Origin: Wallemia ichthyophaga EXF-994
Lineage: Eukaryota; Fungi; Basidiomycota
Direction of reading: 5' to 3'
Assembly (NCBI RefSeq): GCF_000400465.1
Contig: NW_008806280.1
Span: 210,001 to 242,000 of the forward strand
DNA length: 32,000 nt
A model generated the notes under the pieces. The model saw only the letters and a program-made list of their open reading frames with translations, was not told the origin of the DNA and made no database searches. Every line of letters starts with the position of its first letter. The stretch's first letter is position 1. The translations under genes were made by a program, and so were the position numbers. Below are positions 3,065-32,000 of the stretch, in pieces.

Positions 3065-3165
3065 TTTATACCACTTGTATTCTAATCTGTTAAATTTTAT
3101 CTGGCACATGACATAGCCCTGTGCCTAAGGATGCGGTGCACCAAACATTTTATTAACCGACAGCG

Positions 3166-3682
3166 ATGAACTTACTCAAAACACTTAGTGTAATTGGATT
3201 GATCGTAGCAGCTAGCGCTGCTCCAGCCGGCTCAGTGAGTATTGCTCGATAAAATGCGGATTGGCCACTGACATGATACAACCCAGTCAGCACAGAATGA
3301 ACATGCAGCTACCGTAGATAAGGTTAGTGGGCACCTATCAAGTGAGGTAGAGCTAAGGCTTATAAAACAATCCTCGCAGAGAGACTTTGGAGACTTTATT
3401 CAAGGCGCTGAAGATACTGGCGAAGATATAAAGGATTTCTTCACCGGAGAAAAGCGTGATTGGATGGATAAAACTTCAGACTTTTTCGACAATATTGGAG
3501 ACGCCTTCACCGGCGATGACGATAAGCAAAAGCGCGATTGGGTTGAGGACGCTTCAAATTTCTTCGATAACATTGGAGACGCCTTCACCGGCGATGACGA
3601 CAAGCAAAAGCGCGATTGGATCGACGATATCGGACAATTCAGTGAGAACGTCAAGGATATGTTCGATGGTGATGATAAGTAG
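3166..3682 (+). CDS. Secreted Kex2-processed repeat protein (KEP-like peptide precursor), 135 aa, 3 exons
   Basis: Exons 3166-3234 (MNLLKTLSVIGLIVAASAAPAGS, signal-peptide-like), 3287-3322 and 3380-3682. Introns GTGAGT..CAG (3235-3286) and GTTAGT..CAG (3323-3379) keep the frame. Four KR sites each precede DF/DW-starting acidic units. Confidence 0.85.
3452..3619 (+). repeat. Coding tandem repeat, 78-bp (26-codon) period, inside the KEP-like gene
   Basis: AAGCG(T/C)GATTGG recurs at 3452, 3530 and 3608. The 48-nt block ATTGGAGACGCCTTCACCGGCGATGACGA(T/C)AAGCAAAAGCGCGATTGG at 3494-3541 and 3572-3619 differs at one base. Confidence 0.95.
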
Positions 3683-3798
3683 AACACAACGGCGGCTTAG
3701 CGGCTTGTAAATAAATTGCACTGTAAAATCATGGGATATGACAATGCTTGGATTTGTATAATTCTTCTGGTTGAACCATCTACACGGTGCTGAGATAG

Positions 3799-5736: not shown

Positions 5737-5939
5737 CAACTATCATCAGTTTGATTATATCCATAAATTACTTATATGCATTTGGTTTGTTGATAAATTA
5801 GATGGCCTTGTGTTCGTTACTCGTAACTTTGAGAATAAAGTCTGCTTTCAATAGTTACCCTTACTCAGTCATAAAAGTACCAAAAATTCAAAGCGATGAT
5901 AAAACTCTGTCAAAGCATTGTTAAATTTCTGAGAGCTTG

Positions 5940-8390
5940 AATATTACTTAACAGCTGTATCCCTTGGATCCTTAAATACTGGATCTGAGACTCATCTCTG
6001 TATATGATAGGGTGATTTGAATGTTAATTTAATACTATCTAAAGCGTTTTGAAGAAATCTATTGAGCTAAATACGCTCAAGGCACCTTGCAAATGACCAA
6101 GTAAGTGAGAAGTCGAATGCAAATAGGATTACTATGAACGATGTCACGCGCTTCATATATAAATAAACAAATATGTCTAGCTGATGAAGACAAGTAGCAC
6201 CCAATCAGCTCAGAATTTCGGCTGTATAAACGTGATTTACGTTCTCCGACAATTAGCGTCCACAGGATTTCATGCTGGCTCCAAGGAGACTTTATTTTTA
6301 TGACCAGTAGTGCATTTCGAAATTTCAAACAATAGGGTTTGACAGGTATTATAGACTGGATTGGAATCTTAGATGTTATGATTTTAGGAACAAATATTTT
6401 TAGATCTTAAATCACACTCACTGCATTATGTCAAATTTAGCTGGACGAGTGTAGAGCAAATTACTTAAGTTATTCATGATAAGGGCATTTGAATTCTTCT
6501 CACACAGGTACTCTGCACATAATGATATCTAAATCTCCCCACTTTGTACTACCGATGATGCTGTAAAAAATACGTCATTGAGCATGGTATTTTCGACTGT
6601 GAGAGGGGAAGCATGGTAAAAAATAATCCTGAGTGTATTAGAGCTACATTTAAGCTATCTAAGAATCTAATAGCACTCTTCAGCCTTCAAACGACGGTAT
6701 GTCCACGAAAGGAAGACGTGATATTGACGCGCTTAACTATAAGTTCAGCGTTGTAATTTGAAGGCGTACTTTTCTTTCGCTTATCAGTCACCAAAAATGC
6801 TGTCAATAATTCCAAACTCCACCTGTTCTTCCCTCCCTAACTGCCTCAATACCCGTATCTGCTGGTACCACTCCTCAGTAGTCATCGCAACTCAATAAGC
6901 TGAAACAATAATTCCTCAATAATACACTAGGAAAGCTCGCTGTCTTGTTGTATGCAAGATACGCTAGGAATTCAAGTTGCGTGATCCTCTTGTTTAGGCA
7001 GCGCAAGAATATACGTCGTCCAAATTTCAGAGACTAATGATGTCAACTCATCAAACGATACCAAGAGAACATACGATATATATCTTATTCTCTTTCCTTC
7101 TGTCAAAGTGTCATATCGCTGACTTTTCTCGTCAACGCTTTCGGTTGTGTGGTCGGATAGTCACTGGTCGCCGGACATTCATTCTGAATCGATAGTGAGT
7201 CATCGTCGGAAAACTTCATGTTCACTTTATTCCATCTGCTCATTCGCTGTACAAACCGTTCCTCAACCCAGCAGTCGAAAACTTAAAAGAATTGCAGTCT
7301 TGTTAATTACGAGATGCCACGAGCCACGCTAATTTTTAACTGTATCTTAACATCATAACTAATATAATTATAATATCTGACATTGCTTAAGTCACTAGTC
7401 TGAATCTGTTAGGTGACAAACCCAATATTAATCCCAAGCCCTTTTTATCGTCACGCTCTCTCTTCGCCGTCTCGTAAACGTCTTTTACCTTCTCCTCGTA
7501 GCCTTATCGGATAAACCTCCAGGACAGATTTCAAGCAGAACACTTTAAAGGTCACGCTATTTTTATATTACATTCTAATTAATTATTATAATGGATGTTA
7601 AATTTACTGTACAAGTCATTTCTCAAGTACAACTCTGAACCTTAACAGTGCCTTAACAAACTTTGTGATGGAATTAAATTGCTAAGATGAGTTATCGATG
7701 TGAAACAAAAACTTTTATAGAAAAGGGGTAATGGTTGCAATGGCCGGAGTCGTCAAAATCCACGTCATGGCTGTATCTTAATTAACAGAATTACCGAACC
7801 CTGCACGCTTCGAAAAAGAAGAATAAAATTGCTTAAAACGATATGCATTATCAAAATACAAAGATAATTATGCAAATATCAGAATGTAATTGGATCCGCT
7901 AGTCCAAATAATTGCGTAAGGTTAAGACAAATTGAACACAGTCCCAAAAAGGTATCCATTTGTCATTGAGTTTTCTAAGATATCTCTGATTAATACGCAC
8001 TCACTATTTATAATAGCAATTTGGTCACGATTCATAAAAACACTGGCACTGAGGAAAGGATAAGATTGAGGAGAAAAGAAAAGTGAACCAAACAGACAGC
8101 CGTTCAGCCATTTGTATGTTAAAAGTCCAGAAATCATGACATAATATTCTAAATCGCAATATCCTTGAAAAACGATAATGTACATGCTCTAGCTACGATG
8201 AAGAGTAAATAGACGTAAAAAGTAAGCCTGATAATTATTTCTGGGCATTTCCATTGCTGGAAAGCAGGTAACGTCTATGTGTTTATCGAAATCGCATTTA
8301 ACCTCCATTTGACATATGAAATGTTCACATTGATTTGATTCAAAATCATAGAGATCCGTGGGTCTGACAATTTATTCGGTTCACTTGAAT
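5940..8390. repeat. Left arm of long inverted repeat (~2.45 kb)
   Basis: Line-by-line comparison shows position x pairs with 18479-x over the whole arm with no indels. Mismatches seen at 5946, 5955, 7277, 7298, 7317 and 8388. The ORF-track pairs 6077/12402, 7147/11332 and 7922/10557 all sum to 18479. Confidence 0.98.
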
Positions 8391-10088
8391 GCTCAATTTT
8401 TATGTTTAAAGCTTCCATTATAATTCAACTTGTGCACTTCAAAAATTGCTTAAATATTCAGTCGAATTGTGGAACAAGCCATGAATGAATAAATTTTACA
8501 CATTAATTCCCAAAAAGGTTGTGAAATTCGATGAGTGACAGATAATTCTGGACATCTGTTTATCGAGAAAAACTGGATCAATCAATTTAAAAATTAAATC
8601 ACCACCCAGTTGAATTAACCGTTACAATATAGAGACATGGCGATCAGTCTTGAGTGATATACAAAGCCTAAATTAGCTTTGAAGAAGTCATATATTTAGA
8701 CAATTTTTGAAGTCAATTTCCAAGACTGCAAAGTTGAAGATTTGTTGATCTAGTACAAAATAGATGTTCTGCAAGAAGCTTCTTTTTCTTGTCAAAGATC
8801 ATTCTAACTGTATGAGCGTGATTAATAATTATGCTTATTGTCAATCTTAGTTAGTACTTTAAACCCGGAAAATTGTCAGTTTGAAGTGACCGTATCTTGA
8901 TTAGATCCGTGTCAGAAGCTCGATTTCGACAAAATAACTTCGAAATCTAACTTGCGCCAAATCATGATAAAAAAAACACATCAATCAATGGCAGATAAAT
9001 TTTTTTAGTCCATATAGATTTCCCTACACATTATATATCACTATAAAACAAAATAGCGCTAGCTTTATTAACCTAAAGTTTTCGATGGCTTATTATATAT
9101 ATTATACAACGATTTACTCTTACAAGTGTCAGTTTTGTGAAGTTTTTTTAAAGTTAGATCAATACTCGTTAGAATAATATTTTAATCGAACATGTTTTAG
9201 TTAGCTTAAGCGTAAGGAGAAGTAACTTCAAGAATAGACACATCAGTAAATGATGACAGCCGATAAAATGAACGAAGCTTGAAAAACTTCAACGTGATAC
9301 TGTTTCATAAGATGGAGAGAATGTGCCGATTAATACCCTATTGGTTTTTCTAACATTTTTTATTGTTACGTTTTTGATCTAATTAATAATATATATCTTT
9401 TAATGGTCGGGTGCAAAATAATCTCTTAAATGAAAGGTCTCCACCTCTATCAATTCATGGCTTCGTCTCAAATTCCATGTTTTATTATCTATGAATATTT
9501 TTCGGAATAAATGCAGTCATTGTTACCTGCATTCTTTAATCTAAATCAATTATTCAGGAAGTTGGAACATCTGTAGTTCTAACATCCGTAAATAAACCCA
9601 TAGTCGTGGCTAGTTTGTGGATGGCATAAAATCTTCGACTAATCCGAAGTACTTAAAAAGCGAAATTGGAAAAAATTTAACATTCACACACAATTTGCTA
9701 AAATGCTAATCATTTTGTCAAATATACTCATTTTGTCCATCCGTTTTATGCAATTATTTGAAGCATGTCCATGTTAAAAATAGTGAGCTGTTGATCGTAA
9801 GTCGATGTTTGGTTATAATCTAGGATGACCTTTTTATAAAACGATGAATGGGCTACAACAAAATAGTATTCTTTTTTAGTTCACAAGTACTACATTGACT
9901 TTCGTAAACATTAGCCTTTGACTTTTTATAACAATTTTTAGCTTCATGATCTTCATAGTGCGCTTTTATTTTCAAATAACATTGTGTTGACATGAACTTG
10001 AGTTAATAATTTCCCCGTGACTCAATCCCTCAGATCTCTTGTTGTGAGATTACACTGTTTCGCTGAGTTTAAAACACATAACATTTTA
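8391..10088. other. Unique AT-rich non-coding spacer (central core) between the inverted arms, 1698 bp
   Basis: No ORF in the track in any frame. Hand count over 8401-10080 gives 523 G+C in 1680 nt (~31% GC). Many short A/T runs. Not self-complementary. Confidence 0.92.
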
Positions 10089-12539
10089 ATCCAAGTGAAC
10101 CGAATAAATTGTCAGACCCACGGATCTCTATGATTTTGAATCAAATCAATGTGAACATTTCATATGTCAAATGGAGGTTAAATGCGATTTCGATAAACAC
10201 ATAGACGTTACCTGCTTTCCAGCAATGGAAATGCCCAGAAATAATTATCAGGCTTACTTTTTACGTCTATTTACTCTTCATCGTAGCTAGAGCATGTACA
10301 TTATCGTTTTTCAAGGATATTGCGATTTAGAATATTATGTCATGATTTCTGGACTTTTAACATACAAATGGCTGAACGGCTGTCTGTTTGGTTCACTTTT
10401 CTTTTCTCCTCAATCTTATCCTTTCCTCAGTGCCAGTGTTTTTATGAATCGTGACCAAATTGCTATTATAAATAGTGAGTGCGTATTAATCAGAGATATC
10501 TTAGAAAACTCAATGACAAATGGATACCTTTTTGGGACTGTGTTCAATTTGTCTTAACCTTACGCAATTATTTGGACTAGCGGATCCAATTACATTCTGA
10601 TATTTGCATAATTATCTTTGTATTTTGATAATGCATATCGTTTTAAGCAATTTTATTCTTCTTTTTCGAAGCGTGCAGGGTTCGGTAATTCTGTTAATTA
10701 AGATACAGCCATGACGTGGATTTTGACGACTCCGGCCATTGCAACCATTACCCCTTTTCTATAAAAGTTTTTGTTTCACATCGATAACTCATCTTAGCAA
10801 TTTAATTCCATCACAAAGTTTGTTAAGGCACTGTTAAGGTTCAGAGTTGTACTTGAGAAATGACTTGTACAGTAAATTTAACATCCATTATAATAATTAA
10901 TTAGAATGTAATATAAAAATAGCGTGACCTTTAAAGTGTTCTGCTTGAAATCTGTCCTGGAGGTTTATCCGATAAGGCTACGAGGAGAAGGTAAAAGACG
11001 TTTACGAGACGGCGAAGAGAGAGCGTGACGATAAAAAGGGCTTGGGATTAATATTGGGTTTGTCACCTAACAGATTCAGACTAGTGACTTAAGCAATGTC
11101 AGATATTATAATTATATTAGTTATGATGTTAAGATACAGTTAAAAATTAGCGTGGCTCGTGACATCTCGTAATTAACAAGTCTGCAATTCTTTTAAGTTT
11201 TAGACTGCTGGGTTGAGGAACGGTTTGTACAGCGAATGAGCAGATGGAATAAAGTGAACATGAAGTTTTCCGACGATGACTCACTATCGATTCAGAATGA
11301 ATGTCCGGCGACCAGTGACTATCCGACCACACAACCGAAAGCGTTGACGAGAAAAGTCAGCGATATGACACTTTGACAGAAGGAAAGAGAATAAGATATA
11401 TATCGTATGTTCTCTTGGTATCGTTTGATGAGTTGACATCATTAGTCTCTGAAATTTGGACGACGTATATTCTTGCGCTGCCTAAACAAGAGGATCACGC
11501 AACTTGAATTCCTAGCGTATCTTGCATACAACAAGACAGCGAGCTTTCCTAGTGTATTATTGAGGAATTATTGTTTCAGCTTATTGAGTTGCGATGACTA
11601 CTGAGGAGTGGTACCAGCAGATACGGGTATTGAGGCAGTTAGGGAGGGAAGAACAGGTGGAGTTTGGAATTATTGACAGCATTTTTGGTGACTGATAAGC
11701 GAAAGAAAAGTACGCCTTCAAATTACAACGCTGAACTTATAGTTAAGCGCGTCAATATCACGTCTTCCTTTCGTGGACATACCGTCGTTTGAAGGCTGAA
11801 GAGTGCTATTAGATTCTTAGATAGCTTAAATGTAGCTCTAATACACTCAGGATTATTTTTTACCATGCTTCCCCTCTCACAGTCGAAAATACCATGCTCA
11901 ATGACGTATTTTTTACAGCATCATCGGTAGTACAAAGTGGGGAGATTTAGATATCATTATGTGCAGAGTACCTGTGTGAGAAGAATTCAAATGCCCTTAT
12001 CATGAATAACTTAAGTAATTTGCTCTACACTCGTCCAGCTAAATTTGACATAATGCAGTGAGTGTGATTTAAGATCTAAAAATATTTGTTCCTAAAATCA
12101 TAACATCTAAGATTCCAATCCAGTCTATAATACCTGTCAAACCCTATTGTTTGAAATTTCGAAATGCACTACTGGTCATAAAAATAAAGTCTCCTTGGAG
12201 CCAGCATGAAATCCTGTGGACGCTAATTGTCGGAGAACGTAAATCACGTTTATACAGCCGAAATTCTGAGCTGATTGGGTGCTACTTGTCTTCATCAGCT
12301 AGACATATTTGTTTATTTATATATGAAGCGCGTGACATCGTTCATAGTAATCCTATTTGCATTCGACTTCTCACTTACTTGGTCATTTGCAAGGTGCCTT
12401 GAGCGTATTTAGCTCAATAGATTTCTTCAAAACGCTTTAGATAGTATTAAATTAACATTCAAATCACCCTATCATATACAGAGATGAGTCTCAGATCCAG
12501 TATTTAAGGATCCAAGGGATACAACTGTTAAGCAATATT
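10089..12539. repeat. Right arm of long inverted repeat (~2.45 kb)
   Basis: Reverse complement of 5940-8390, with mismatches at 12533, 12524, 11202, 11181, 11162 and 10091. Confidence 0.98.
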
Positions 12540-12713
12540 GAAACCCTTAGAAGTAATCAATTCGTGCATTTTTCTTCTGTATGCATTACTTGCATTAGTG
12601 AATGTGTGACTCAACCAGGAACGAGAAAGCGAAGGAATGATATATATTACATCAATCCGGTATATACCATTAAGAGACTACATCTATTATAATGTGCAAA
12701 GTATAAAATACAG

Positions 12714-15537
12714 TTAACTTTCAATCAGACCGAGTCTCTCCTTCGATCTCTTGCTAGCGCGATATAGCTCATGAAGAGCTTTCCTAACTCCATTAAAGTC
12801 ACAAGCCTCTATACAGCTGTTGTAAACATTTAGTAAACGCTAGTAGCCTATAAAAATCTAACTCACGACGTATACTTGTCAATGAAAAAGCTCTGATCCG
12901 CCATACCCACATTGACCAGCTTGGATTGCTGAATAATAGCAGGTATGACGTTTTTCATCAGCGCAGCATCGAACTCTGAAAGCTGTCTTAGGAGAGTGAT
13001 AACCGTACTGGTGCAGTCTTCCGGGAAGGTGTTGAGTAAACCTTGTAATAGTACTTTTGTTAAATTGGCGATATTAGTATGATTCGAGAGGGTGTTCTTG
13101 ATTGTATTTTTGTCCACTTCAACGTTGTCACCACTAGTTAAGTATCCAACTAATGATCTTATGAAATCCAATGAGATCAAGATTGTGTCAACACTAAACA
13201 ACGTTAATGCAGTGAGGGATAATTCGAAAATAGGCTGAATCACGCTTCCATTGATAACGAGTGCAGGTCTGAGATCAATGATCTGTAGTAATAAATGCAA
13301 ATAATCTTCAACTAAGTCAGGTATTTTGGTTGCATCAGTTGATTGTAAAATTGAGAATAATTTATTAGATATTTTGTTGAACGATTGACTTATAAGCTGT
13401 TTATCGTTAGCAGCATAGTTAAAAGCCTTGGTCAGCAACCAAATATACACTGATAGAGGATTTAAGTCGAATGAATTGGTCAGTAATTCAATTAACTTTG
13501 GTATAACTGTAACGACAGCCTGCTCATCGAAGAATCTTAATCCCTTTCTAAACAATCCACAGACTCTTTCGATCAAAGTCGCTGATGACCTATTATGATG
13601 GACAATAATACTTGCGAATACGTCATACAACTCATAAAAAGTCACCTGGCATTGGATTGGTAAGGGTGCGATTGGACCTGTGAAGGCAATGTAGCATTCA
13701 ATTTGCTCTATATTGATAATCAAGATCTTGATATCATCATGAGATAAAGTGCTCTTCGTGATAACCCCCTTGACATTATTCAAGTATGGTTGAGTGAACT
13801 TCTGTATGAGAGCCAACTGATCGTTCTTATCGCTGATGGACTCAATGACCAAAGAGATGGATTCGGAGATAGATCTGTGATCATCTTCTTGTAAACCAGA
13901 CTGAATTAGTTGATTGTTGAACTCCAATAGTTGAGGTAAATAAGGTATCAATTGCTTGTTGCAGTCTTCGCATAAGAACTTTAAAGCTTGCGAAGAAGCA
14001 GCAGGGATGTCAACATCCTTACAACTGAGATCGAAACCTGTTGTGATAAACGACATATAGAATGGAATGTGGTCAGGCTTTAAATTGATCCACTCAGTAA
14101 ACCTAGAAGCAACCAATATACCTGCATACTTGATTCTAGGATGTTGAGGAAGGTTTGGCAGCAAATTGAAGATGTTCTCTAAAATTTCATTGTCGCTCTG
14201 GTAATCGACTTTGGAGCCCATAGACCTAATTGAAAAGAGAGGCGCTTCAACTGATTGCCATTCATTTGAATTAATTGCAGTAAGAATCAAGGAATACGAC
14301 CTAGACAAGCAGTAGCTTGATCCTATCACAGTGCAACAATCTTTTAAGGTGTCACCAATGTAATGCCTAAATGATCTGAAGTCATCATACTCTTGAGCAG
14401 TGATAGTGGATTCATCGAGAGGAAATTTTAAATGATTGATGAAAATGTCAAGCAAAGACGAGTAGATTGGTACGAAATGCGGCTTTAAATCACTCTTTAT
14501 GTCCAGAGAATGAGCCAGCTTGTACCAGAAGTTGAAGGTGATCTGGGCTATGTCTAAATCGTGATAGGATGATGATGAAATAATGGCTTGAATGACATGG
14601 CTGAATGACGAAGGTGATGATAACATGAGCGGCAAGTAAGTTTCACCGACTTGGCAGTACAGTCTGGTGAAAAGTCTAACAGCGTCGTTATCTTCTTGGT
14701 CAATGTTGAGTGGCTTTGATAACTCTAATAAGATGACAGTGATTAGCTCGTTATTATCTTGTAGCTCTTGAGACTCATTGATAAGGACTATAAGAGTTTC
14801 AATACCAGACTCGACCAAACTTTCGTCTTGAAGTGAGTTTAAAAGGGAGGACAAAATGTTGGAATTAAGCAAAGAAGATGGAAAAATTTCGCCAGAGACT
14901 AGCCAAGATTTCAAGCAATTAAAGACTAAAGCATTGTCTGTGTTGCTATTGGCAATATACGAGTCCAAAAGCTGTAAGACTTTATTGGAGTTGTTGGTAA
15001 GGAGAGTGGATGAACGGTGAGAGAGCTGGTCGTAAGAAAGCTGAATTCTTTGATTATTGACTTCTTCAGGTAAAATGGTCAAAAAGTCAAGTAGAATGTC
15101 ATTATTTGCCGAGTAGAAGGACTCAACGTAATCAGTCACGGGATCTGACCAATCAAAGTACTGAATGGCCAAATCAGCTAACGATAAATTCAAATAAGTC
15201 TTCAAAACGCGTGGATGATTAGATTTAACTAAAGAGGAAAGCAAAGTGTCTTTAAGTGAGGATAGTGATTGATATGGCAACTGGTCGAAATCGTAGATAA
15301 TTTTTGATCTAAACGTCTGCACTGCGAATAGTTTTAATTCCAAAGGTAAATTATCCTCGACTAAGAGGTCGTTGGATATTTGCCATGCATCTTGCTACGC
15401 GAGTGGTTAGAAACGCAGGCCAAGCACGTGTAACTCACAGTCTGTTGAAACGATTGCAGATATTCATTGGCTAGTGATTTTTTGCTGTTATCTGCATCAT
15501 AGTATAAAATATTCAACGCCTCTATAACTTGAGCCAT
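12714..15537 (-). CDS. MTR10: Transportin-SR / Mtr10 importin-beta family nuclear import receptor, spliced
   Basis: ATG 15537 (MAQVIEALNILYYDADNSKKSLANEYLQSFQQT), intron, then QDAWQISNDLL..ELKLFAVQTFRSKIIYD, DFLTILPEE, TFNFWYKL, FRSFRHYIGDTLKDCC, WQSVEAPLFSIRSMG. Final intron 12817-12866 leads to a last exon ending in TAA at 12714. Confidence 0.93.
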
Positions 15538-20500: not shown

Positions 20501-20927
20501 CGTCCAACTTCTTGTTAACGTGTTCCGGAACCATTTCAATATGCTCACCGAGTTGTAGATTTGGTAATAAATAGCAATCATCGGTAATAATTTCAGTTGG
20601 AATTGGACCAATTTCATCAGATATCTCGCCTTTTACGCGTTTTTCTAATAGATCGAGCCAATTTTTAGGGATAACATACCAAATGTCACCTTGCTCTAGA
20701 GGATAGGACAAAGCAGTGTAAATGAGATTCCAAATTTGAGATAAATCTTGAGAAATAGAGAGATCCTGAACGTTGTCTTGGATTGAAGGAGTTGTTGGCT
20801 GCTCAATTTCAATTTGAGCGTCGTCAGCGATTTCACCTTCGCGCTCTTCTGAGTTGTTGCGCTTCGAAGGGCTCTCAGAGTGATGTACACCTTCTAAATC
20901 TCTAAAGCTGCGCTTATTCGATACCAT
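17577..20927 (-). CDS. UBP12: Ubiquitin C-terminal hydrolase with DUSP domain (Ubp12 / USP4-11-15 family), spliced
   Basis: ATG 20927. DUSP-like [12 protein letters not shown]. Cys box [38 protein letters not shown], zinc-finger CPEC and WYCSKC. His box DNHY|GGLGGGHYT restored by intron 17862-17909. Confidence 0.93.
17630..17658. repeat. 9-bp coding microrepeat (CATTTGTCT x3) encoding [10 protein letters not shown] in the UBP12 tail
   Basis: Three exact units are visible at 17630-17656. Confidence 0.9.
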
Positions 20928-21001: not shown

Positions 21002-21916
21002 ATGGAAGATATAAAGCAATTTTATTTTGAGGGTGAGAATTGCTGTATTCTGATTGGCCGAAGTAAATTTACATGCATTCCAGGCTCACATGAGCAAGTT
21101 ATCGACTCAGTTGATAGTTCAGCACTGGACACGCTCCAAGATCGCATTAATCTCATTTACTCTGTGAGATCTCATATCGCTCTTCAGAAAACTTTGCCAT
21201 ATATCCACCCTGAAGCCATTGAATCACACATAGAATTGCGGGTTTTGGACGCATATACCAACTACATCACCGCTAAAGAACAGACAGAATCTTTGGATAT
21301 CCTCAGGGACTGCTTGATAGAGCTTGAGTCTGAGGAGCATCCGTTTAAAGGTCTTCTCAGTGTTTTGGCTGCCTCAGTCTTCTGGCAGGGTGGTGAAATC
21401 GAAGAGGCGCTCTCAACTTTAGGCGCAGGCCAAGGTGTAAAAGATGTAGAATGCGTAGCTCTTCTTATACAGATCTATATCACCATGAACAGACTCGATT
21501 TGGCGAAGAACGAGTACCAGCACGCTCGTACATGGGCTGATGATAATTACCTCATTCAGCTGTCTGAAGCTTGGTTGGGCCTTGCTGGTGCATCCACATC
21601 CGCGAATATTGGTTATGAACATGCTTACTACATTCTCGAAGAACTCCCAGATAGAGAGAAGCCATACAATAAATTACTCAGAGCGATAGCTCACGCAGCA
21701 CTCAGTCACTTTGATGAGGCGCAGGTTGAGCTTGACGCTCTCAGTCTAGATGACGAAAACACGCTGACTAACACCATTGTCATTTCCACACACTTGAACA
21801 AAGATACCAAGACGCTGATTGATAAACTGCGCTCTATTAACTCAAACAACCCTCTTATAAAAGGATTAGATGCAAAGAGCAACGAATTTGACAGTCTATC
21901 AAAGCAATTTATGTAA
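21002..21916 (+). CDS. SEC28: Coatomer epsilon subunit (epsilon-COP)
   Basis: TPR-like helices with CVALLIQIYITMNRLDLAK..WADDNYLIQLSEAWLGLA and C-terminal KSNEFDSLSKQF. The track ORF reads through a probable in-frame intron (GTGAGA..TTCCAG) after MEDIKQFYFE. Confidence 0.85.
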   Translation: MEDIKQFYFEGENCCILIGRSKFTCIPGSHEQVIDSVDSSALDTLQDRINLIYSVRSHIALQKTLPYIHPEAIESHIELRVLDAYTNYITAKEQTESLDILRDCLIELESEEHPFKGLLSVLAASVFWQGGEIEEALSTLGAGQGVKDVECVALLIQIYITMNRLDLAKNEYQHARTWADDNYLIQLSEAWLGLAGASTSANIGYEHAYYILEELPDREKPYNKLLRAIAHAALSHFDEAQVELDALSLDDENTLTNTIVISTHLNKDTKTLIDKLRSINSNNPLIKGLDAKSNEFDSLSKQFM

Positions 21917-23312: not shown

Positions 23313-23694
23313 ATGGCCGAAAACGAGACGAACGCCAACGACGGCAAAGTAAATCTCAAAGTCGCTTACAGCCAGGGTATGTCTATAAGATATTCAAATA
23401 CGCGCATATTCTTATTCCACTCTTCTTCTCCCAGGCGGTAGTGAAGATGAAATACAATTCTCGGTAAAGCCAACAACAAAGCTTGGTAAAATATTTGCTG
23501 CTTTCTGCCAAAGAACTGGTCAAGATCAATGTGCGTTTCCTTTGCCCTTTTGCACCTCCTCTCACTCCACCACAGCCACTGTTAGATTCACATTCAACGG
23601 CGACAGATTGGATCCAGACGATACCGTCAAGCAATATGAAATGGAAGACGACGACCAATTACAGGCCCACGTCTCCCAAATTGGCGGCCTTTAA
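23313..23694 (+). CDS. SMT3: SUMO precursor, 3 exons
   Basis: Spliced product MAENETNANDGKVNLKVAYSQGGSEDEIQFSVKPTTKLGKIFAAFCQRTGQDQSTVRFTFNGDRLDPDDTVKQYEMEDDDQLQAHVSQIGGL*, with QIGG di-glycine. Missed by the ORF track because of introns. Confidence 0.9.
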
Positions 23695-24013
23695 ATTCCT
23701 CACACCATCGATGTCCTCACGCCTAGTGAAAAGTTTCACCGAACGATTGAAGCATTGTGTATAATTAATAAATCTACCATTCCAGCACTCGCCGCTGTAC
23801 ATAAATTGTCCTATTTATCATTTTCCTTGTATGTCTGCTAGCAGCGCAACATAAACTTAAAGTTGTGCACATAAATTCATTCAAGTCGTGCGGTGGTGCT
23901 TAATTAGCACAATCATAAATACGCCTCTACATCGCGACGCGTCATCAGATATTTCAACCGTGATTGTGTTGTAAAGTAATAAGTTATGACAAAAAAATAC
24001 AAAATCAATCCTT

Positions 24014-26420
24014 CTACGCCTGTAAACTAGTCCAGTATGCATCTTGACTTGGGATCGACGATAGCCCAGTCGTATAAGCCAACTCAATCCCCCTATCGTG
24101 TATATAGTGATCGCTGATTCTGGTCCATGGTCCAGGTATACTGCCCTTGGTTGCATGGTGCGCCTCATAGAAGAGCTTTATCCCAGGCGCAATCGATGAC
24201 TTGCTCTCGTTGGACGTATCCATAATCATCACAGCTTGAACTACATCGAGTATCACCTGGCGCACTCGTCAGAGGTTTAAAGCTGTTAGAGGAAAACTCA
24301 CCTCCGTTAGTCCGATATTATGATTGTTGGTCTCCCAAAGTAATCTTGGTAGGTTGTTGAACCAACCTGTCAACATCTTATCCTGCTCTGAGTTGTTGAT
24401 CAATTTGAATTGCCCCTTATAATCCATTTCATATTGAGTCAGATAGACCCTGGCGATAAATTCCACAGACAACAACTTAGTCTCGGATTTAATACCCGCT
24501 TGAGTGCAGTGGGTGAGTAATGCTTCTAGAATTAATTTCGAAGCGTCGACTGAGTTTGGAAGATTCAATAAAGCCCAGAATGATGATACAAGACACCTGT
24601 ATGTGTCCGCAGTCACTGTTAATCCCATTGGTTGAGCAGCTGTTGTCATCTAGAGGATCATCAGCAAGAGATGATAGATAAGAGAAAAACTGACGTTTCC
24701 ACTTAACATACTGCTAAGCCACTCGCAAACATTATTCATCTGTACTTGAATGTTTTTGTCTAATTTTTGCTCACGCTTGCTAGCACCACTCGAAACTCCC
24801 TCTCTGGATGACTGCGACAACAACAAAGACGAGACTAATTCGCAGTATAGAACATTCAGCTGGAGCATGTACTGATCGACTTCCATTGCTTGCTTTTGAA
24901 GGAAGTCACCGCCAAATGGGAAGTACTTTGACATGTGAGTGAGAATTATACTCAACTCCTTCTCTATTATGTGTCTTTCTGAACAATTACGTAGCAAGTA
25001 GCCGTAAGTTTCCCTACATATTTCCACTACAGCCGTTATTGACTCCAGGTGGATCGAATCCGGGGGTGTATTGGACATGGTAAAGACCGAGGGTGCCGAT
25101 TCAAGAAATACCGAGACGATGACACTAAATAATGACTGAGTCAATGACTATATTATCGTCAGCTACCTATATGTCACTATATGAGACTTACCAAGACGTC
25201 AGCTTCAGCTGGTGTGAAATTCGAAGCTGATTGGGTGGATTCGAGCAACCCAATAGCATTGTTGAGCTCATCGGACGTCAAGCTACCACCAGCTTCCATA
25301 ATTTCAGACTTGTAACCGCTCATACATCCTTTCCAGGCATCATGACTACTATGCCATTGTACAGTTTCTTTACCAGTATCACAGTAAGCAGATCTCCGTA
25401 TACGTTTAACAAAAACGTCGAAAGCCGGCTGAGAAGCAAAAGCGGATGCAAATGGCCAAAGAGGTAGTTTGTCTGAGGCGTCGTTGGAAGAGAGGGCGGT
25501 CTTGAGGAACTTTGAGAGTGACTTGAGAACAACCAATCTAGACTGATGGTGTGTTAGAGTTGTATGTATCGAATGAAATAGCTCACCTTGACACTAAGCG
25601 TGAACATAGCATTGGCGGTAGTGGTGACGGTTGAGCCAGCAGCAGGACCCTTATCGTCGCCCTTTGCGCTAAGCAAAGCCAAGTAGCATTCAATAATCTG
25701 CCTGCCGCCTATAGACGTAGGATTGGTGGAAGAAGAAGCAACTGCCCAGCCATTTATGACGAATTGGGGAATGAAATCGATGAGAATGTCAAGGAACTTA
25801 ATGCTGTCCAATCTAACCTCTGGGAAAATGTGAGAGAGACCAGAAGCAGTGAATAAAAGAAGGATAGAGGAGTAAGGGGTCCAACTTGGCTTAGGGATTC
25901 TAGGAAACAAATCTGAAGCCAGGGAATGGAGAGCTCTACGAACGGCAGCATCTTCATCAACGATAAGCTTAGTGATACCATCGAATATAGATGTTAGATT
26001 TGGGTTTATTGTGCTTGGGTAGCTTGTTATCAATTCGCGAAGACCCAAAACGCCGTCTGGTGGGAGTTGGTAAATGGATTATTGGCTAAAGGATAGAAAG
26101 CCCACCTCTTCTCATATTTGGAGAATAATGCTTCAAATGAACCAACAAGTCTTTCAACGTTAAATTACGCTTTGTGTGTGGTTCATTCTCATCAACGTCC
26201 TTGAGAATACTCTGTCCAGGCAAAGCAACGGCTAATGTGGGTTAGATACACACACTATCAGTACACCCAACTGACATCTTGCTTTAAATGAAGTATTCGT
26301 CGAATTCGTTGCCGCCTGCTTCCCTTTACCAAGCTTTGTTTTCTGCTTCTATTTTACTTGTTAAATTATTCAAAATCTCAGGCAATCACAAACTCTGAAA
26401 TCTGGCGCCTGCTTTGGCAT
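24014..26420 (-). CDS. IPI1: Rix1-complex pre-rRNA processing protein Ipi1 (TEX10-like), multi-exon
   Basis: ATG 26420 (MPKQAPDFR|KQKTKLGKGKQAATNSTNTSFKAR|..VALPGQSI, ..LLVHLKHYSPNMRR). Ipi1_N-like LSHIFPEVRLDSIKFLDILI. 3' end placed at the TAG at 24014, less certain. Confidence 0.82.
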
Positions 26421-26482
26421 CTTGGTGGTTAACACTCAACCATCATCTCCCACGCGTATACCCAATTCTCATTTATCAAAAT
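26421..26482. promoter_or_regulatory. 62-bp divergent intergenic region between IPI1 and the dynein C-terminal gene
   Basis: Head-to-head ATGs at 26420 (-) and 26483 (+). Confidence 0.55.
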
Positions 26483-29400
26483 ATGAATTCGACTCAGCCA
26501 CAGAGGTTAGCTTTTTATTCATTCTGGCCAATCAAATCTCATTTTCCCCTAGAGATGCTCTATCTGGTACTGCCCATGTAGAGCTGCTCGGCAAGTCACT
26601 CAATATAAATCAGCGCATGGGCGTTTTTGGTGGGTTTTATCGGTTCATATGGCAATTCTAATTTCAATTTCAGTTACCAGCAATCCCGGTGAGCCACTCT
26701 CCATTGCATTCCTCTCCTCTCTAACCGCGTACAGGTTACGCCGGTCGCAGTAATTTACCAGACAATCTCAAGAAATTATTCAGATCTCAGGCTATGACTC
26801 ACCCTGATAGAGAATCTATCGCCCAAGTCATGCTTTTCTCGCAAGGTTTCAGATCCGCCGAAAAGCTCGCCTCTAAGATTGTCCCCTTTTTCGTTCTCTG
26901 CGCCGAGCAGCTCTCTCCTCAGCCTCACTATGATTTTGGCCTTCGTGCTCTCAAGGCTGTCCTCATTTCCGCCGGTAATCTCAAGCGTGATCGTATCTTA
27001 TCCTCTGTTGACACCCCCAACCAAGGCGAGAACAGCCTTATCGAACAAGAAATACTTATTCAAAGCGTTACTGAAACTATCGTCCCAAAACTCGTCGCTG
27101 AGGATGTCCCCTTACTCACTAACCTCTTATCAGACGTTTTTCCAGGTGTTGAATACGTACCCGTCGATTTGTCTGCTTTGAAAGAAAAAATTGCTCTTGT
27201 TTGCTCCGAGAGGAAGCTCGTTAAAGGTGACTTATGGCTCACCAAGGTTTTGCAACTTTACCAGATTCAACGCATTCAGCACGGTTTGATGATGGTTGGT
27301 CCCGCTGGTACTGGTAAAACTCAAGCTTGGCAGGTATTATCTCAAGCTTTAGAAAGACTTGACGGCGTTGAAAGCGTTTCTTACGTCATTGATCCCAAAG
27401 CAATGTCCAAAGAAGCGCTTTACGGTACCCTTGATCAAACCACACGTGAATGGAACGACGGCCTTTTCACCCATATCTTGCGCAAAATCGTCGATAATGT
27501 TCGCGGTGAAAGCTCAAAAAGACATTGGATCATCTTTGATGGTGATGTTGATCCTGAATGGGTTGAGAACCTCAACAGTGTTCTCGATGACAACAAGCTT
27601 CTCACTCTCCCCAACGGTGAGCGTCTCAATCTGCCATCCAACGTTAAGATTATGTTTGAAGTCGAGCATCTAAAGTATGCAACTCCTGCAACTGTCAGTA
27701 GATGTGGTATGATTTGGTTTAGCGGTGATGCTGTCACACAGGAAATGTACTGTACAAACTATCTTGATACCCTTGCAAACATGCCTCTCGATGGTGATGA
27801 AGAGACTGGCATCGATATGACAGTGCGGCGTGGCGAGGTTATTTCAAACAAAAACCACCAGACTTCTCCTTCACTTCAACTTCAAAGAAATGTGGTGGAC
27901 ATTCTCAAGCCTTCTTTTCAGCCAGGCATGATAGTAGACAGTGCACTAAAACATGCTGCTACTTACGAGCACATAATGGACTTCACCTTCATGCGCGCAC
28001 TCACTACGCTCTTCTCACTTATCAATAAATCTATAAGAAATGTTATTGATCACAATCTCCAACATTCAGATTTCCCCCTTTCAATTCAACACGTTGAGCA
28101 ATACATCAACAAGCGCCTTTTAGTAGCTATTGTTTGGGCTTTTACAGGCGACACAAAATTAGACCTCCGTCTTGAAATGGGTGACTATTTACGGGGTCTC
28201 ACGACAATTGAGTTACCAATAATTGGTGATGGTATGTCCTTAATAGACTTCGATGTAAACGTGGCTACTTCAGACTGGTTCAATTGGACAGAGAAAGTTC
28301 CTACAATCGAACTAGAGACTCATGCTGTTACTGTTGCTGATGTGGTCGTTCCTACCGTTGATACGATCAGACATGAGGAGGTTCTCTATTCTTGGCTGTC
28401 TGAACACAAACCTCTGATGCTCTGTGGGCCACCAGGATCTGGTAAAGTAAGTATTTTCACCTATGTCAAGATTTATACTAATGTTCAATTTAGACAATGA
28501 CACTCTTCTCTGCATTACGTAAATTACCAGATATGGAAATTGTTGGACTTAACTTCTCATCTGCTACCACGCCAGAGCTCATTTTGAAAACATTCGAACA
28601 ATACTGTGAACTTCGTAAAACACCAAATGGAAATGTATTGGCTCCATCTCAAATCGGTCGTTGGTTGGTGGTTTTCTGTGATGAGATCAATTTGCCGGCC
28701 TTAGACAAGTATGGTACACAAAAGGTTATCTCTTTCCTGCGTCAATTAGTGGAATCGAACGGTTACTGGCGCACATCTGATATGACATGGGTGCAGCTGG
28801 AACGAATTCAATTTGTTGGTGCATGTAACCCACCTACTGATCCTGGACGTGTTCCACTGACCCAAAGATTCCTTAGACACGCACCACTTGTCATGGTCGA
28901 CTATCCCGGTGAAATATCTCTCAACCAAATTTACGGCACATTTAATCGCGCTTTACTCAAGTCGGTCCCTCAATTGCGCGGCTATGCTGAGGCTTTGACT
29001 GGTGCAATGGTTGAACTTTATCTTGAGTCACAGAGAAGGTTTACGGCTGATATTCAAGCTCACTATATCTATTCACCACGTGAATTGACTCGTTGGGCTA
29101 GAGGCATCTTTGATGCGATAAAACCATTAGATACGCTTACAGTTGAAGGTCTTGTCAGAATATGGGCACATGAGGCTCTTCGTCTCTTCCAAGACAGGCT
29201 TGTTGGCGCAGATGAGAGAAAGTGGACAGATGAACGCGTTGATTCTATTGCTTTAAAGCACTTCCAGAATATCGAGAGCGAAAGTGCGCTTTCCAGGCCA
29301 ATTCTTTTCTCCAATTGGTTGTCTAAGAATTACGTCTCTGTTGATCGTGAGGAATTGAGAGAATTCGTTAAGTCCCGTTTACACATATTCGAAGAGGAAG

Positions 29401-32000
29401 AGCTTGATGTTCAGCTTGTTTTGTTCGACGATGTTCTTGACAATGTCTTACGTATTGATAAAGTTCTCCGACAAGTACAAGGTCATGCTTTATTGATTGG
29501 TGTCAGTGGTAGTGGCAAAACAACGCTTTCACGCTTTGTCGCTTGGATGAATGGTCTCAGTATTTTCCAAATCAAAGTTTCGAATAGCTATACAGGTGAA
29601 GATTTCGACGAAGACCTCAAAACAGTACTGCGCAGAGCAGGCACGAAAGATGAGAAAATTTGCTTCATTATGGACGAATCAAATGTTCTTGACTCAGGCT
29701 TTTTGGAGCGTATGAATACCTTGCTCGCCAATGCCGAGGTTCCAGGATTGTTTGAAGGAGATGAGCATTCTTCACTTATGACAGCTTGTAAAGAAGGGGC
29801 AGCCAGAAACGGCATGATGTTAGACTCGCACGACGAATTATACAGGTGGTTCACTAGTCAAGTCTCAAGAAACTTACATGTTGTTTTCACCATGAATCCA
29901 CCAGAAAATGGCTTGGCTTCAAGAGCTGCTACGTCCCCTGCACTTTTCAACCGCTGTGTTGTTACATGGATGGGTGATTGGGCACCTGCCTCCCTTGCAA
30001 CCGTAGCTTCCGAGCTTACTGATCCTCTTGATGTGAGTACTTCCTAATTGGTTTGCGTTTCTAACCCTTGCATAGATCGATACGCGTGTTTACAACCCGC
30101 CTGCTCCATTTCCCACTGCTCATCATACTCTTCAAGCAGATCTTACTTACAGAGGTGCCGTTGTAAACGCCTTCGTTTACGTGCACCTATCTTTACATGA
30201 GATCAGCAAGCGCTTGAGTAAACGACAAGGTCGTTATAAGTGAGTGTCTTTCACGTTTTGAGATTATTGCTCATGTGATTCAGCTATGTCACTCCTCGAC
30301 ACTACTTGGATTTTATTGACCAATACGTTAAGTTGTTCAATGAAAAGCGTAATGAACTGGAAGAGCAACAGCGTCATTTGAATGTTGGTTTAGATAAACT
30401 ACGCGATACGGTAGTTCAAGTTGATGAACTTCAAAAAAGCTTAGCCGTAAAAGACACTCAATTGAAAGCCAAAGTTGCCGAGGGAGATGAAAAATTAGCC
30501 AAAATGCTTGAAGAGCAGAAACAGGCCGAGAGCAACAAAGCTACCTCAATCCAAATTCAAAGTCAGCTTCAAGAACAGAACAAAAACATAGCGCAGAGGA
30601 AAGAGGTTGTTATGACTGATCTTGCTGATGCTGAACCAGCTGTTAAAAGTGCACAGGAGTCCGTTAGTAATATCAAGAAGCAACATCTCACAGAAGTCAG
30701 ATCTATGGGTAACCCTCCAGAAGGTGTCAAGCTCGCTATGGAATCCGTTTGCACCGTACTGGGACATAAACTTGATGGTTGGAAGACCGTTCAGGGTATC
30801 ATCAGAAGAGATGATTTTATCCATTCAATCGTTAACTTCGACACTACCAAGCAAATGTCTAAGAGCCTCAGCGATCGTATTAAAAATGAGTTCATGTCGA
30901 GACCTAAGTACAACTTCGAAGACATTAATCGTGCATCGAAAGCATGTGGACCTTTAGTTAAATGGGTTATTGCTCAAGTACACTTTGCGGAGATACTCGA
31001 CAGGGTCGGTCCACTTAGGAACGAGGTGCACTATCTCGAAGAAAAGAGTTTGCACACACAGAAGCAAGCCAGCACTATAATTGACATGATCAAAGAGCTC
31101 GAAGACAGCATAGGAAAGTACAAGGACGAGTATGCAGGCCTAATTTCGGAACAGCAAGCTATTAAGAGTGAGACTGAGCGCGTACAGAAAAAAGTCGAAA
31201 GAAGTAAAACATTGTTGAGTTCACTTTCAGCCGAGCAAGATCGTTGGGAGACAAGCTCAAAGACATTCGAGTCTCAAATGAGTACGATTGTTGGAGACGT
31301 ACTTCTATCAGCTGCTTTCCTCGCATATGCTGGCTTCTTTGACCAACAGTACAGAGAAGCAATGTGGAATGGCTGGGTTACATATATGAATGATGCTGGT
31401 ATTAAATTCAAACAGGAGCTCTCGTTCGCCGACTATCTCTCGACTGCCGATGACAGACTTAGCTGGCAATCTAAATCTCTTCCAGCAGATACTCTCTGTA
31501 CAGAGAATGCCATCATGATGAGTCGTTTTAACAGGTTCCCACTCATCATTGATCCATCTGGTCAAGCATCTAATTTCCTTATCAACGAGTATAAAGGTTC
31601 GAACAGAAAATTGAGTGTGACCAGCTTTTCGGACAACTCATTCCTAAAGCAGCTGGAATCAGCAATGAGATTCGGTAATCCAATACTCGTTCAGGATGTA
31701 GAGTTTTTGGATCCGATCATTAACCCAATATTAAACAAGGAGATTCGAAGAAGTGGTGGTCGTGTACTTATTCGTGTTGGTAATCAAGACATCGACTACT
31801 CGCCTGCCTTCAACATGTTCCTAATGACACGTGATCCAAGTGTCGAATTCAGTCCAGATGTTTGCAGTAGAGTAACGTTCGTAAACTTTACCATGACGAG
31901 AAGCTCTCTCCAATCTCAATCTCTAGACCAAGTGCTCAAATCAGAAAGACCAGACGTAGATGCAAAGAGAACAAATCTTCTCAAACTACAGGGCGAGTTC
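26483..32000 (+). CDS. DYN1: Cytoplasmic dynein heavy chain, C-terminal part only (second half of AAA1 through AAA5), 3' truncated by the window edge
   Basis: Exons 26483-26505, 26553-26629, 26674-26688 and 26735 onward give [64 protein letters not shown]. Then AAA2 ([47 protein letters not shown]), AAA3 (GPPGSGK|[10 protein letters not shown]), AAA4 ([13 protein letters not shown]), TPRHYLDFI, stalk/MTBD ([29 protein letters not shown]) and AAA5 ([22 protein letters not shown]). Confidence 0.95.

Follow-up and report, generated by a model that had tools for sequence, protein, structure and literature searches.

The locus described here raises the question of whether a dynein heavy-chain gene that begins in the middle of the AAA1 module is a gene in its own right and, if so, where the remainder of the ATPase site would come from. 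AAA1 is the only dynein ATP site that is strictly required for motility.

Gene structure and domain content of the dynein C-half gene

The sequence of the window (the whole stretch of DNA analysed, 32 kb) was read directly, and the gene encoding the C-terminal part of the dynein heavy chain, referred to here as the dynein C-half gene, was found to open with an ATG at 26483 on the + strand. Its exons and introns were as follows.

26483-26505, + strand: exon 1, start codon and leader MNSTQPQ(R), that is, MNSTQPQ plus 2 nt
26506-26552, + strand: intron 1, 47 nt, GTTAGC...TAG, of the GT..AG type
26553-26629, + strand: exon 2, end of the variable loop, the AAA1 PS-I (H3-beta4) beta-hairpin and the start of strand beta4
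26630-26673, + strand: intron 2, 44 nt, GTGGGT...CAG
26674-26688, + strand: exon 3, a 15-nt microexon encoding VTSNP, with the AAA1 sensor-I asparagine, Asn37
26689-26734, + strand: intron 3, 46 nt, GTGAGC...CAG
26735-28446, + strand: exon 4, remainder of the AAA1 large subdomain, AAA1 small subdomain and AAA2 (P-loop GPAGTGKT), up to the AAA3 P-loop; Pfam AAA_6 at residues 12-234, AAA_5 at 223-361 and Dynein_AAA_lid at 434-558
28447-28493, + strand: intron 4
28494-30032, + strand: exon 5, AAA3 (GPPGSGKT) and AAA4 (GVSGSGKT); Pfam AAA_7 at 569-744, DYN_lid, and AAA_8 at 916-1194
30033-30075, + strand: intron 5
30076-30239, + strand: exon 6
30240-30283, + strand: intron 6
30284-32000, + strand: exon 7, stalk/microtubule-binding domain and AAA5; Pfam MT at 1209-1544 and AAA_9 at 1570-1791

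The gene runs past the end of the window (32000) to a total of 2640 aa, and Pfam analysis of the full protein placed Dynein_heavy, AAA_lid_11 and Dynein_C in the part encoded beyond it. Extended to 32000, the seven-exon model reproduced the first 1749 residues of the public 2640-aa protein P0284 with 0 mismatches, and the gene annotation was identical in at least 10 W. ichthyophaga assemblies. The 7-codon leader MNSTQPQ on an exon of its own, proposed in the first-pass annotation together with canonical introns, was borne out by the GT..AG boundaries and by 10 annotated 2640-aa W. ichthyophaga proteins, all of which share this start, a Met followed by a short leader. An exact match to the open reading frame at 26794-28497 was absent from the contig index.

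The best structural-sequence match of the C-half was the human cytoplasmic dynein-1 heavy chain (E=9e-94); because the other classes scored more weakly (axonemal dyneins 1e-53 or weaker, dynein-2 5e-48), the protein is assigned to the cytoplasmic rather than the axonemal or IFT dyneins. Its Pfam matches, AAA_6 (part), AAA_5, lid, AAA_7, DYN_lid, AAA_8, MT, AAA_9, Dynein_heavy, AAA_lid_11 and Dynein_C, follow the canonical DHC1 module order from AAA1 to AAA6, with the stalk and microtubule-binding domain between AAA4 and AAA5 and a C-terminal domain at the end. All catalytic blocks 3′ of the break are intact. DHC_N1 and DHC_N2 gave no Pfam matches in the C-half, which is not a single polypeptide with tail, linker and a complete AAA1 bearing GPAGTGKT as Walker A and CFDEFNR as Walker B. 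In a homology search with the N-terminus of the C-half, the matches listed were all fragments of at most 681 aa, none of them from Wallemia. The Wallemia C-half proteins cluster at 90% under a 2640-aa representative.

The break lies in a length-variable loop of the AAA1 large subdomain

The Pfam AAA_6 match (E=7e-68) began at protein residue 12 and covered only profile positions 117-327 of 327. Residue 4 of the C-half aligned to residue 1986 of human DYNC1H1, about 75 residues past the human P-loop, and the start of the chain corresponds to human residue ~1983-1986. [quoted passage not shown] Two details of that proposal needed correction. Dynein homology had been said to begin at R8; residues 1-12 form a non-conserved leader, disordered in the AF2 model (pLDDT below 50), and recognisable homology begins only at residue ~12-14, with the hairpin. 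The sensor-I asparagine was indeed found in this segment and, as N37, is nearly invariant in the alignment, while the motif around it reads TSNPGY and not TMNPGY as had been stated.

The hairpin itself, which corresponds to the H3-beta4 insert given for S. cerevisiae DYN1 as residues 1874-1892 (Gleave et al. 2014), could be recognised by the PS-I motif phi-x-phi-x-G-x-x-phi-x-phi (Gleave et al. 2014), which is present at residues 17-26, and the AF2 model placed its strands at residues 14-19 and 22-27 (E14-19/E22-27). Model pLDDT was 33-73 over the first 60 residues versus 86-98 afterwards, low values of the kind that would be expected from an incomplete folding unit. Intact fragments that cross the position of the break read CFDEFNRLEERxLSAVSQQIQxIQxxL-loop-ELxGK...IFITxNPGY. 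Across ~225 intact dyneins the spacer from Walker B to beta4 ranged from 41 to 71 aa, and comparison of the shortest and longest intact examples showed that the difference in length sits in the loop where the Wallemia chain is broken. The break is therefore at a length-variable surface loop that connects helix H3 to the PS-I hairpin in the AAA1 large subdomain. In dynein, AAA1L contains Walker A, Walker B and sensor I, AAA1S contains sensor II, and the arginine finger belongs to AAA2L (Schmidt & Carter 2016). A break at this loop should leave Walker A and B on one chain and place sensor I, sensor II and the arginine finger of AAA2 on a second.

The upstream region carries IPI1 and no dynein exons

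Immediately 5′ of the dynein start codon, the following features were placed.

24014-26420, - strand: IPI1 (Rix1-complex subunit), divergent from the dynein gene, start codon at 26418-26420
26421-26482, no strand: intergenic region, 62 bp between the divergent IPI1 and dynein start codons

IPI1 had been described as divergent and 62 bp from the dynein ATG, and both the exact gap count and a Pfam Ipi1_N match on the open reading frame at 25554-26048 confirmed this. The spliced N-terminus of the predicted protein, MPKQAPDFRKQKTKLGKGK, is typical of Ipi1, and three strain assemblies (L002-L004) carry an annotated Ipi1_N gene of 696 aa at the corresponding place. From its position, the intergenic region would be a promoter region shared by IPI1 and the dynein C-half gene; 62 bp is very short for two promoters, a point that counts against the explanation preferred below. 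It also contains an ACGCGT (MCB-like) element, to which we gave no weight as the motif is not enriched in the window (6 observed vs 3.2 expected).

An in-frame TGA is located at 26396, 87 nt 5′ of the dynein ATG. The 87 nt from this TGA to the ATG contain neither an in-frame ATG nor an AG dinucleotide, and thus no canonical splice acceptor. For the search of the wider region we used a locus whose dynein is intact across the Wallemia break (L001) as the source of tblastn queries. The open reading frames for its tail, linker and AAA1 N-part gave no match in the whole 32-kb window, and its C-part matched the window only from 26737 on. This agrees with the view in the first-pass annotation that the tail, the linker and the Walker A and B of AAA1 are missing from the locus; none of these elements was found anywhere in the 32 kb, and no dynein exon was found on either strand in the 26 kb upstream.

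Searches for the N-terminal partner

In a representative library queried with residues 1-306 of P0025, a fragment ending at the break, no Wallemia-like end appeared among the best 150 of thousands of matches; the listed proteins that ended near the break were intron read-throughs or truncated fragments. Similarly, when 404 residues preceding the break, reconstructed from L001, were used in a word-index search, no partner appeared among the best 120 of thousands of matches, none of the listed proteins being longer than ~680 aa. In both lists the entries either continued intact over the break or were fragments of unrelated origin. The 119 listed matches that carried the Walker B motif all read through the break or stopped only at or beyond the hairpin. 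The existence of the N-terminal partner, its end-point and the absence of an intact copy are taken from the literature on W. sebi/mellicola (PMC4540427, PMC5100056).

Conservation across strains and in W. mellicola

The source organism, Wallemia ichthyophaga, a salt-loving fungus, belongs to the Wallemiomycetes, and the best named matches of the neighbouring coatomer-epsilon gene were from W. ichthyophaga, W. hederae and W. mellicola. Compared with W. ichthyophaga SPOE01000014.1, the window showed 99.78% nucleotide identity over 19.6 kb and identical synteny. The orthologue in W. mellicola (CBS 633.66, locus L006, which ends ~190 nt short of the W. mellicola dynein start codon) is also 2640 aa long and shares 90% amino acid identity; the 15-nt microexon and its intron positions are common to both species, and the IPI1-dynein block lies in the opposite orientation. 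Between the two species dN was 0.07, synonymous sites were saturated and third-position identity was 49%. Amino acid identity of 90% and a dN of 0.07 against saturated synonymous sites indicate strong purifying selection.

We infer that the window gene is probably the orthologue of W. sebi v1.0 JGI 67017, because length is identical, amino acid identity is 90%, and the neighbours and the microexon are shared. Synteny and the numbering of the identifiers lead to the same equation, since 67017 is three numbers away from the coatomer gene WALSEDRAFT_67014 and the W. mellicola 2640-aa orthologue lies three genes from WALSEDRAFT_67014 in L006. Four further related loci from Logan (L007-L010) end inside or before the dynein gene, and their open reading frames were singletons in the cluster look-up.

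A split heavy chain assembled in trans and its alternatives

These observations are very probably explained if the gene whose 5′ end lies in the window encodes the C-terminal chain, of 2640 residues, of a Wallemiomycetes-type split DHC1, which is broken inside AAA1, has its partner at an unlinked locus and is assembled in trans. An ancestral gene for a chain of ~4600 aa would have been broken inside the AAA1 large subdomain, in the loop between H3 (after Walker B) and the beta-hairpin that precedes sensor I, and the C-half would now use a start codon of its own, with a very small divergent promoter region in common with IPI1. The C-half would supply the PS-I hairpin, beta4 with the sensor-I Asn, H4 and beta5, as well as the small subdomain of AAA1 with sensor II, AAA2 with its arginine finger, and the remainder of the chain through the C-terminal domain. 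Tail, linker and the AAA1 strands beta1-beta3, together with Walker A and Walker B, would come from a second, unlinked gene, whose product is reported as 1979 aa in W. sebi/mellicola. Each chain would be translated separately, and the two would associate non-covalently, as the literature also suggests, by fragment complementation of the AAA1 alpha/beta core, with beta4 and beta5 of the C-half intercalating with beta1-beta3 of the N-half. Assembly of the AAA1 site in trans would be the natural consequence, in agreement with the literature, and the principal ATPase site would be built from two polypeptides.

It seems very improbable that the halves are instead joined at the RNA level, by cis-splicing from distant exons or by trans-splicing, which would yield a full-length chain and leave the ATG at 26483 unused. 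Giardia is a case in which dynein heavy chains are trans-spliced (cited in PMC5100056), but here an in-frame TGA stands 87 nt upstream with no AG acceptor before the ATG, the IPI1 coding sequence lies directly upstream on the other strand, dynein exons are absent from both strands of the 26 kb upstream, and the Met start with a short leader recurs in every W. ichthyophaga annotation. Just as improbable is a 5′-truncated duplicate or relic, with an intact DHC1 elsewhere in the genome doing the work. Such a copy would hardly retain an open frame of 2640 aa both in at least 10 strains and in W. mellicola, nor show 90% amino acid identity, a dN of 0.07 and strong purifying selection, with every catalytic block 3′ of the break intact; moreover, two surveys saw only two partial Wallemia genes (PMC4540427, PMC5100056).

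We give still less credence to a loss of the N-half in Wallemia, by which the 2640-aa protein would act alone or with a non-dynein partner and form no canonical AAA1 site. The lack of a partner among the best 120-150 of thousands of dynein matches would fit such a loss, but a search that showed the best 120-150 of thousands only is uninformative on this point. Against it, a partner, JGI 59093 of 1979 aa, is given by Brunsch (PMC4540427), the retained sensor-I Asn, PS-I hairpin and AAA1 small subdomain would be senseless without Walker A and B, and the first 60 residues model poorly alone. An assembly misjoin at ~26420-26483 that cut off the 5′ part of a normal dynein gene has the smallest likelihood, a nearly negligible one. 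The window does contain assembly-unfriendly sequence in the form of a large inverted repeat (5927-12552), but collinearity across the junction holds in three other strain assemblies (identity 99.7-99.8%), which differ from the window by 0-1 mismatch over the 380 nt around the IPI1/dynein junction. Assemblies with different contig sizes give the same N-terminus, W. mellicola encodes a product of the same length in a different genomic arrangement, and the junction is flanked by a proper start codon, a leader and the IPI1 start.

Relation to published split dyneins

The split of DHC1 seen here is already known in Wallemia from papers of 2015 and 2016, and annotation of the gene is routine; the suspicion of the first-pass annotation that the split might be noted in outline was thus well founded, as this is the published Wallemiomycetes pattern (PMC4540427, PMC5100056). 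Kollmar described the Wallemia DHC1 as split "within AAA1", with ESTs that cover the termini and no bridging reads (Kollmar 2016, PMC5100056). Brunsch et al. placed the Wallemiomycetes split "after 1979 aa" (JGI IDs 59093 and 67017) and worded it as lying 'between the first and second AAA module' (Brunsch et al. 2015, PMC4540427). Both surveys, which are independent, found only two partial Wallemia genes and concatenated them into one DHC (PMC4540427, PMC5100056). Compared with the sequence seen here, the module-boundary wording of Brunsch et al. lacks precision. The two products add up to 4619 aa (1979 + 2640), which is a normal length for a DHC1. The window gene is the W. ichthyophaga member of this pair of genes and shows no essential difference from the W. 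sebi/mellicola JGI 59093 and 67017, of the same genus and with the same break within AAA1.

The Wallemia pattern is the third published split in basidiomycetes; in Cryptococcus and Puccinia the heavy chain is unsplit. In Ustilago maydis (Straube et al. 2001, EMBO J 20:5091), two genes reportedly give the separately translated chains Dyn1 and Dyn2, which combine into a single motor. This is likewise a basidiomycete two-gene cytoplasmic dynein broken inside an AAA module, but its break falls in AAA4, ahead of the stalk, whereas that of Wallemia is in AAA1, the essential hydrolytic site. In Schizophyllum commune Dhc1/Dhc2, the Agaricomycetes/Dacrymycetes type, the break in the two-gene heavy chain separates the tail/dimerisation region from the motor at ~aa 1180 (Brunsch et al. 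2015, PMC4540427). The agaricomycete type keeps the linker and the AAA ring on one chain, whereas in Wallemia the linker and the first half of AAA1L would be on the other chain. The break had been said to match neither pattern, and this is upheld. Unlike the Ustilaginomycotina type, the C-half is uninterrupted through AAA4 and the stalk, with Pfam AAA_8 (916-1194), MT (1209-1544) and AAA_9 (1570-1791) continuous in one protein; unlike the Agaricomycetes/Dacrymycetes type, it is devoid of the DHC_N2 linker and of the N-terminal part of AAA1 with Walker A/B, as seen by Pfam and tblastn. Intact DHC1 (human DYNC1H1 PDB 5NUG/7Z8F, yeast Dyn1, Dictyostelium 3VKG) has its motifs in the same order, from the PS-I hairpin through to the C-terminal domain, but the Wallemia C-half has a 12-residue leader in place of the first ~1980 residues (tail, linker, AAA1 Walker A/B).

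What is added here is the structural placement of the break, which reconciles the wording of the two papers, and the conservation of the break and of the 5′ gene structure between W. ichthyophaga and W. mellicola. The published accounts are coarse, and there is a slim chance that a break bisecting the AAA1 alpha/beta core at one length-variable loop, with a beta-sheet then interdigitated from two chains, has gone unrecognised. An AAA1 large subdomain made from two gene products would show how well the motor tolerates chain breaks, and the break would mark a permissive loop usable to engineer split dyneins. If true and functional, the arrangement would be natural proof that the main catalytic domain of dynein tolerates fragment complementation; the stoichiometry of the halves, or the order in which they fold, could perhaps regulate assembly, and a design for split or conditionally assembled dynein motors would be ready-made. 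As a separate observation, the L001 dynein, intact across the Wallemia break, appears to show a Ustilago-type end after AAA_8.

A single chain carries dynein from mid-AAA1 to the C-terminus

The sequence and its spliced translation bore out the gene structure proposed by the first-pass annotation, with a start codon at 26483, a MNSTQPQ leader on its own exon and canonical introns. The dynein gene and its opposite-strand neighbour have the following features:

From 26483 (ATG), plus strand: dynein exon 1, 23 nt, MNSTQPQ plus two bases (spliced translation)
Between exons 1-4, plus strand: dynein introns 1-3, GT..AG, of 47, 44 and 46 nt
26553-26629, plus strand: dynein exon 2 (spliced translation)
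26674-26688, plus strand: dynein exon 3, a 15-nt microexon encoding VTSNP
Starting at 26735, plus strand: dynein exon 4 (spliced translation)
Start at 26420, minus strand: IPI1, Pfam Ipi1_N, spliced N-terminus MPKQAPDFRKQKTKLGKGK, a 696-aa annotated gene in the same place in other assemblies

Carried on to the window end, the dynein model comprised seven exons and 1749 residues. It includes the P-loops GPAGTGKT (AAA2), GPPGSGKT (AAA3) and GVSGSGKT (AAA4) and, after them, the stalk and AAA5. The publicly annotated 2640-aa W. ichthyophaga dynein (P0284) was identical to the model over all 1749 residues, and a cluster look-up returned ten annotated 2640-aa proteins, P0284 among them, sharing a common N-terminal start. 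The Pfam order in the full 2640-aa protein was AAA_6 (partial), AAA_5, lid, AAA_7, DYN_lid, AAA_8, MT, AAA_9, Dynein_heavy, AAA_lid_11 and Dynein_C; one chain carries all of dynein from mid-AAA1 to the C-terminus.

Judged by sequence comparison, the dynein homology of this gene is overwhelming. At E=9e-94, its product matched human cytoplasmic dynein-1 heavy chain, query residue 4 lying opposite human residue 1986. AAA_6, the 'hydrolytic ATP binding site of dynein motor region', was matched (E=7e-68) from protein residue 12 but only in part, at positions 117-327 of a 327-position profile. A homology search with the dynein returned short ORF fragments only, with no close relative among the matches listed. 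The AAA2 P-loop (about 27305-27328, residues 227-234) reads GPAGTGKT in both W. ichthyophaga and W. mellicola, the same octet as in the canonical AAA1 P-loop, and is GPSGSGKS/T-like in all other dyneins collected for comparison.

Dynein exons are absent upstream of the start codon in the window

The two start codons are separated by exactly 62 bp, as originally described. All long ORFs of a fungal reference locus (L001, GCA_036704275.1), whose dynein gene is continuous across the break point, were used as tblastn queries against the window. ORFs for the tail, linker and N-terminal part of AAA1 gave no match on either strand, the sole matches being those of C-terminal ORFs, from 26737 onward. 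The nearest in-frame stop is 87 nt 5' of the dynein ATG, and the intervening 87 nt contain neither an in-frame ATG nor an AG dinucleotide, so that a canonical acceptor for an upstream exon is lacking. The proposed lack of an upstream tail, linker and AAA1 Walker A/B therefore holds within the window.

In the high-GC L001, dynein ORFs run from DHC_N1 to AAA_8 (3511-14771), followed by a 153-aa ORF without Pfam match and an opposite-strand polyubiquitin gene; this dynein looks like a Ustilago-type dyn1 ending in AAA4. The 62-bp gap also contains an MluI-box-like ACGCGT hexamer (26452-26457), which may be there by chance; the hexamer is not enriched across the window (6 observed, 3.2 expected).

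The split gene is conserved between W. ichthyophaga and W. mellicola

The best named matches of the coatomer-epsilon ORF (21002-21913) were W. ichthyophaga (94%), W. hederae (71%) and W. mellicola CBS 633.66 (64%). Over 19.6 kb, other W. ichthyophaga contigs showed 99.7-99.8% identity with the window, and their genes lay in the same order: importin, UCH, coatomer, succinyl-CoA ligase alpha, SUMO-like, IPI1 (minus) and dynein (plus), the dynein being an annotated 2640-aa product starting 62 bp from IPI1. The W. mellicola orthologue likewise has 2640 aa, with 90% protein identity to the window gene, and the VTSNP microexon and intron positions are the same (L006, the W. mellicola locus, 20895-20920, minus strand). 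Since L006 stops about 190 nt short of the start codon, the cross-species comparison covers the gene downstream of the leader. Over exon 4, dN was 0.07, third-position identity only 49% and synonymous sites were saturated.

With this conservation, a decaying relic is ruled out. An assembly misjoin, which the first-pass annotation had raised, is likewise excluded when the collinear strain assemblies are considered as well, with their 0-1 mismatch over the 380 nt that surround the junction.

In W. mellicola the dynein lies on the opposite strand and directly adjoins the SUMO-like gene, and the IPI1-dynein block is apparently inverted. The orientation of the pair relative to the SUMO-like gene differs by lineage (L006 12331-20924; L007, a Logan relative, SRR25399871, 12353-18565; window 23313-32000): in W. 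mellicola and the Logan relative the dynein points its 3' end towards the SUMO-like gene, IPI1 lies between the two in W. ichthyophaga, and the pair is absent from the corresponding W. hederae locus (L005). These differences suggest that a small inversion or translocation took place around the split dynein gene.

The break falls in an insertion-tolerant loop of AAA1

Intact dyneins read CFDEFNRLEERxLSAVSQQIQxIQxxL, a loop, phi-E-phi-phi-GK...phi-x-phi and IFITxNPGYAGR. The AAA1 pre-sensor-I (PS-I, H3-beta4) insert forms a beta-hairpin and carries the motif phi-x-phi-x-G-x-x-phi-x-phi; its order in crystal structures is described as weak and its surface residues as non-conserved (Gleave et al. 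2014). This motif occupies residues 17-26 of the window protein, after a leader that is not conserved. In a set of about 225 intact dyneins, Walker B was joined to beta4 by a spacer of 41 to 71 residues; of the examples printed, the shortest and the longest differ in length within the H3-hairpin loop. On these alignments, the break thus coincides with the sole insertion-tolerant loop of an otherwise extremely conserved segment. The sensor-I motif, on the conserved microexon, is TSNPGY instead of the usual TMNPGY/TTNPxY, and its Asn37 is nearly invariant in the alignment.

AAA1 would be assembled from two chains

An AlphaFold2 model of residues 1-368 had a mean pLDDT of 86. Residues 1-12 were disordered, a hairpin formed at 14-19/22-27 and the expected beta4 strand did not form; pLDDT was only 33-73 over the first 60 residues, whereas the AAA1 small subdomain and AAA2L reached 86-98. 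The model is consistent with the N-terminus being a fragment whose folding depends on the absent beta1-beta3. Both Walker motifs and sensor I belong to the AAA1 large subdomain (AAA1L), sensor II to the small subdomain (AAA1S) and the arginine finger to AAA2L (Schmidt & Carter 2016). Given this standard assignment and the break position, Walker A/B should reside on the Wallemia N-terminal half, while sensor I (Asn37), sensor II and the arginine finger are on the C-terminal half. The AAA1L sheet would then form by co-folding or fragment complementation of the two halves.

The Wallemia split is a published pattern

The first-pass annotation rightly suspected that the split might already be noted in outline. 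Brunsch et al. 2015 (PMC4540427, Table A) list Wallemia sebi v1.0 proteins 59093 and 67017 as split dynein and place the break 'between the first and second AAA module', whereas Kollmar 2016 (PMC5100056) places it 'within AAA1'; the latter is accurate and the former is not. This makes the window gene the W. ichthyophaga representative of the third basidiomycete split pattern to have been published. Near the W. mellicola dynein, WALSEDRAFT_67014 is the coatomer gene and the dynein lies three genes further on; gene order and ID numbering fit its being JGI ID 67017. Residue 1 of the window protein corresponds to about human residue 1983, and, with the N-terminal half reported as 1979 aa, the two halves sum to a normal DHC1 length (1979 + 2640 = 4619 aa).

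The N-terminal partner was sought among 1.84 billion representatives, scanned without a profile for matches to 306 pre-break residues, and by a word index with 404 pre-break residues, which returned no protein above 681 aa. No protein ending at the break was among the best 120-150 of thousands of dynein matches, a result of little weight. The N-terminal gene and the absence of an intact copy rest on Brunsch et al. (PMC4540427) and Kollmar (PMC5100056).

Altogether, the observation is confirmed and its proposed interpretation, a separate gene for the C-terminal part of dynein broken inside AAA1, is supported; an ATPase site assembled in trans would follow from it. The split is biologically striking, but it had been published before, and annotations routinely include the gene. 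It is unlikely that the precise cut through the AAA1L core at the H3/PS-I loop, with its consequences for assembly or regulation, has escaped earlier analysis.

Other observations

Aminotransferase and importin-13-like are annotated as a fused 1301-aa product in W. ichthyophaga (L002, a strain assembly, 406-5082), and UCH, aminotransferase and importin as a 2401-aa product in W. hederae (L005 1758-9958). All three are separate genes in W. mellicola; the fused products are probably annotation merges.

An inverted repeat with 2487-nt arms (5927-8413 and 10066-12552), 99% complementary and with a 1652-nt spacer, lies where the window is richest in AT (GC 0.30-0.37) and contains only short ORFs. 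It may represent transposon ends, a palindrome, a centromere-like region or an assembly artefact. In three further strain assemblies of W. ichthyophaga, contigs begin within its right arm (window 12309-12414), indicating that the repeat breaks short-read assemblies.
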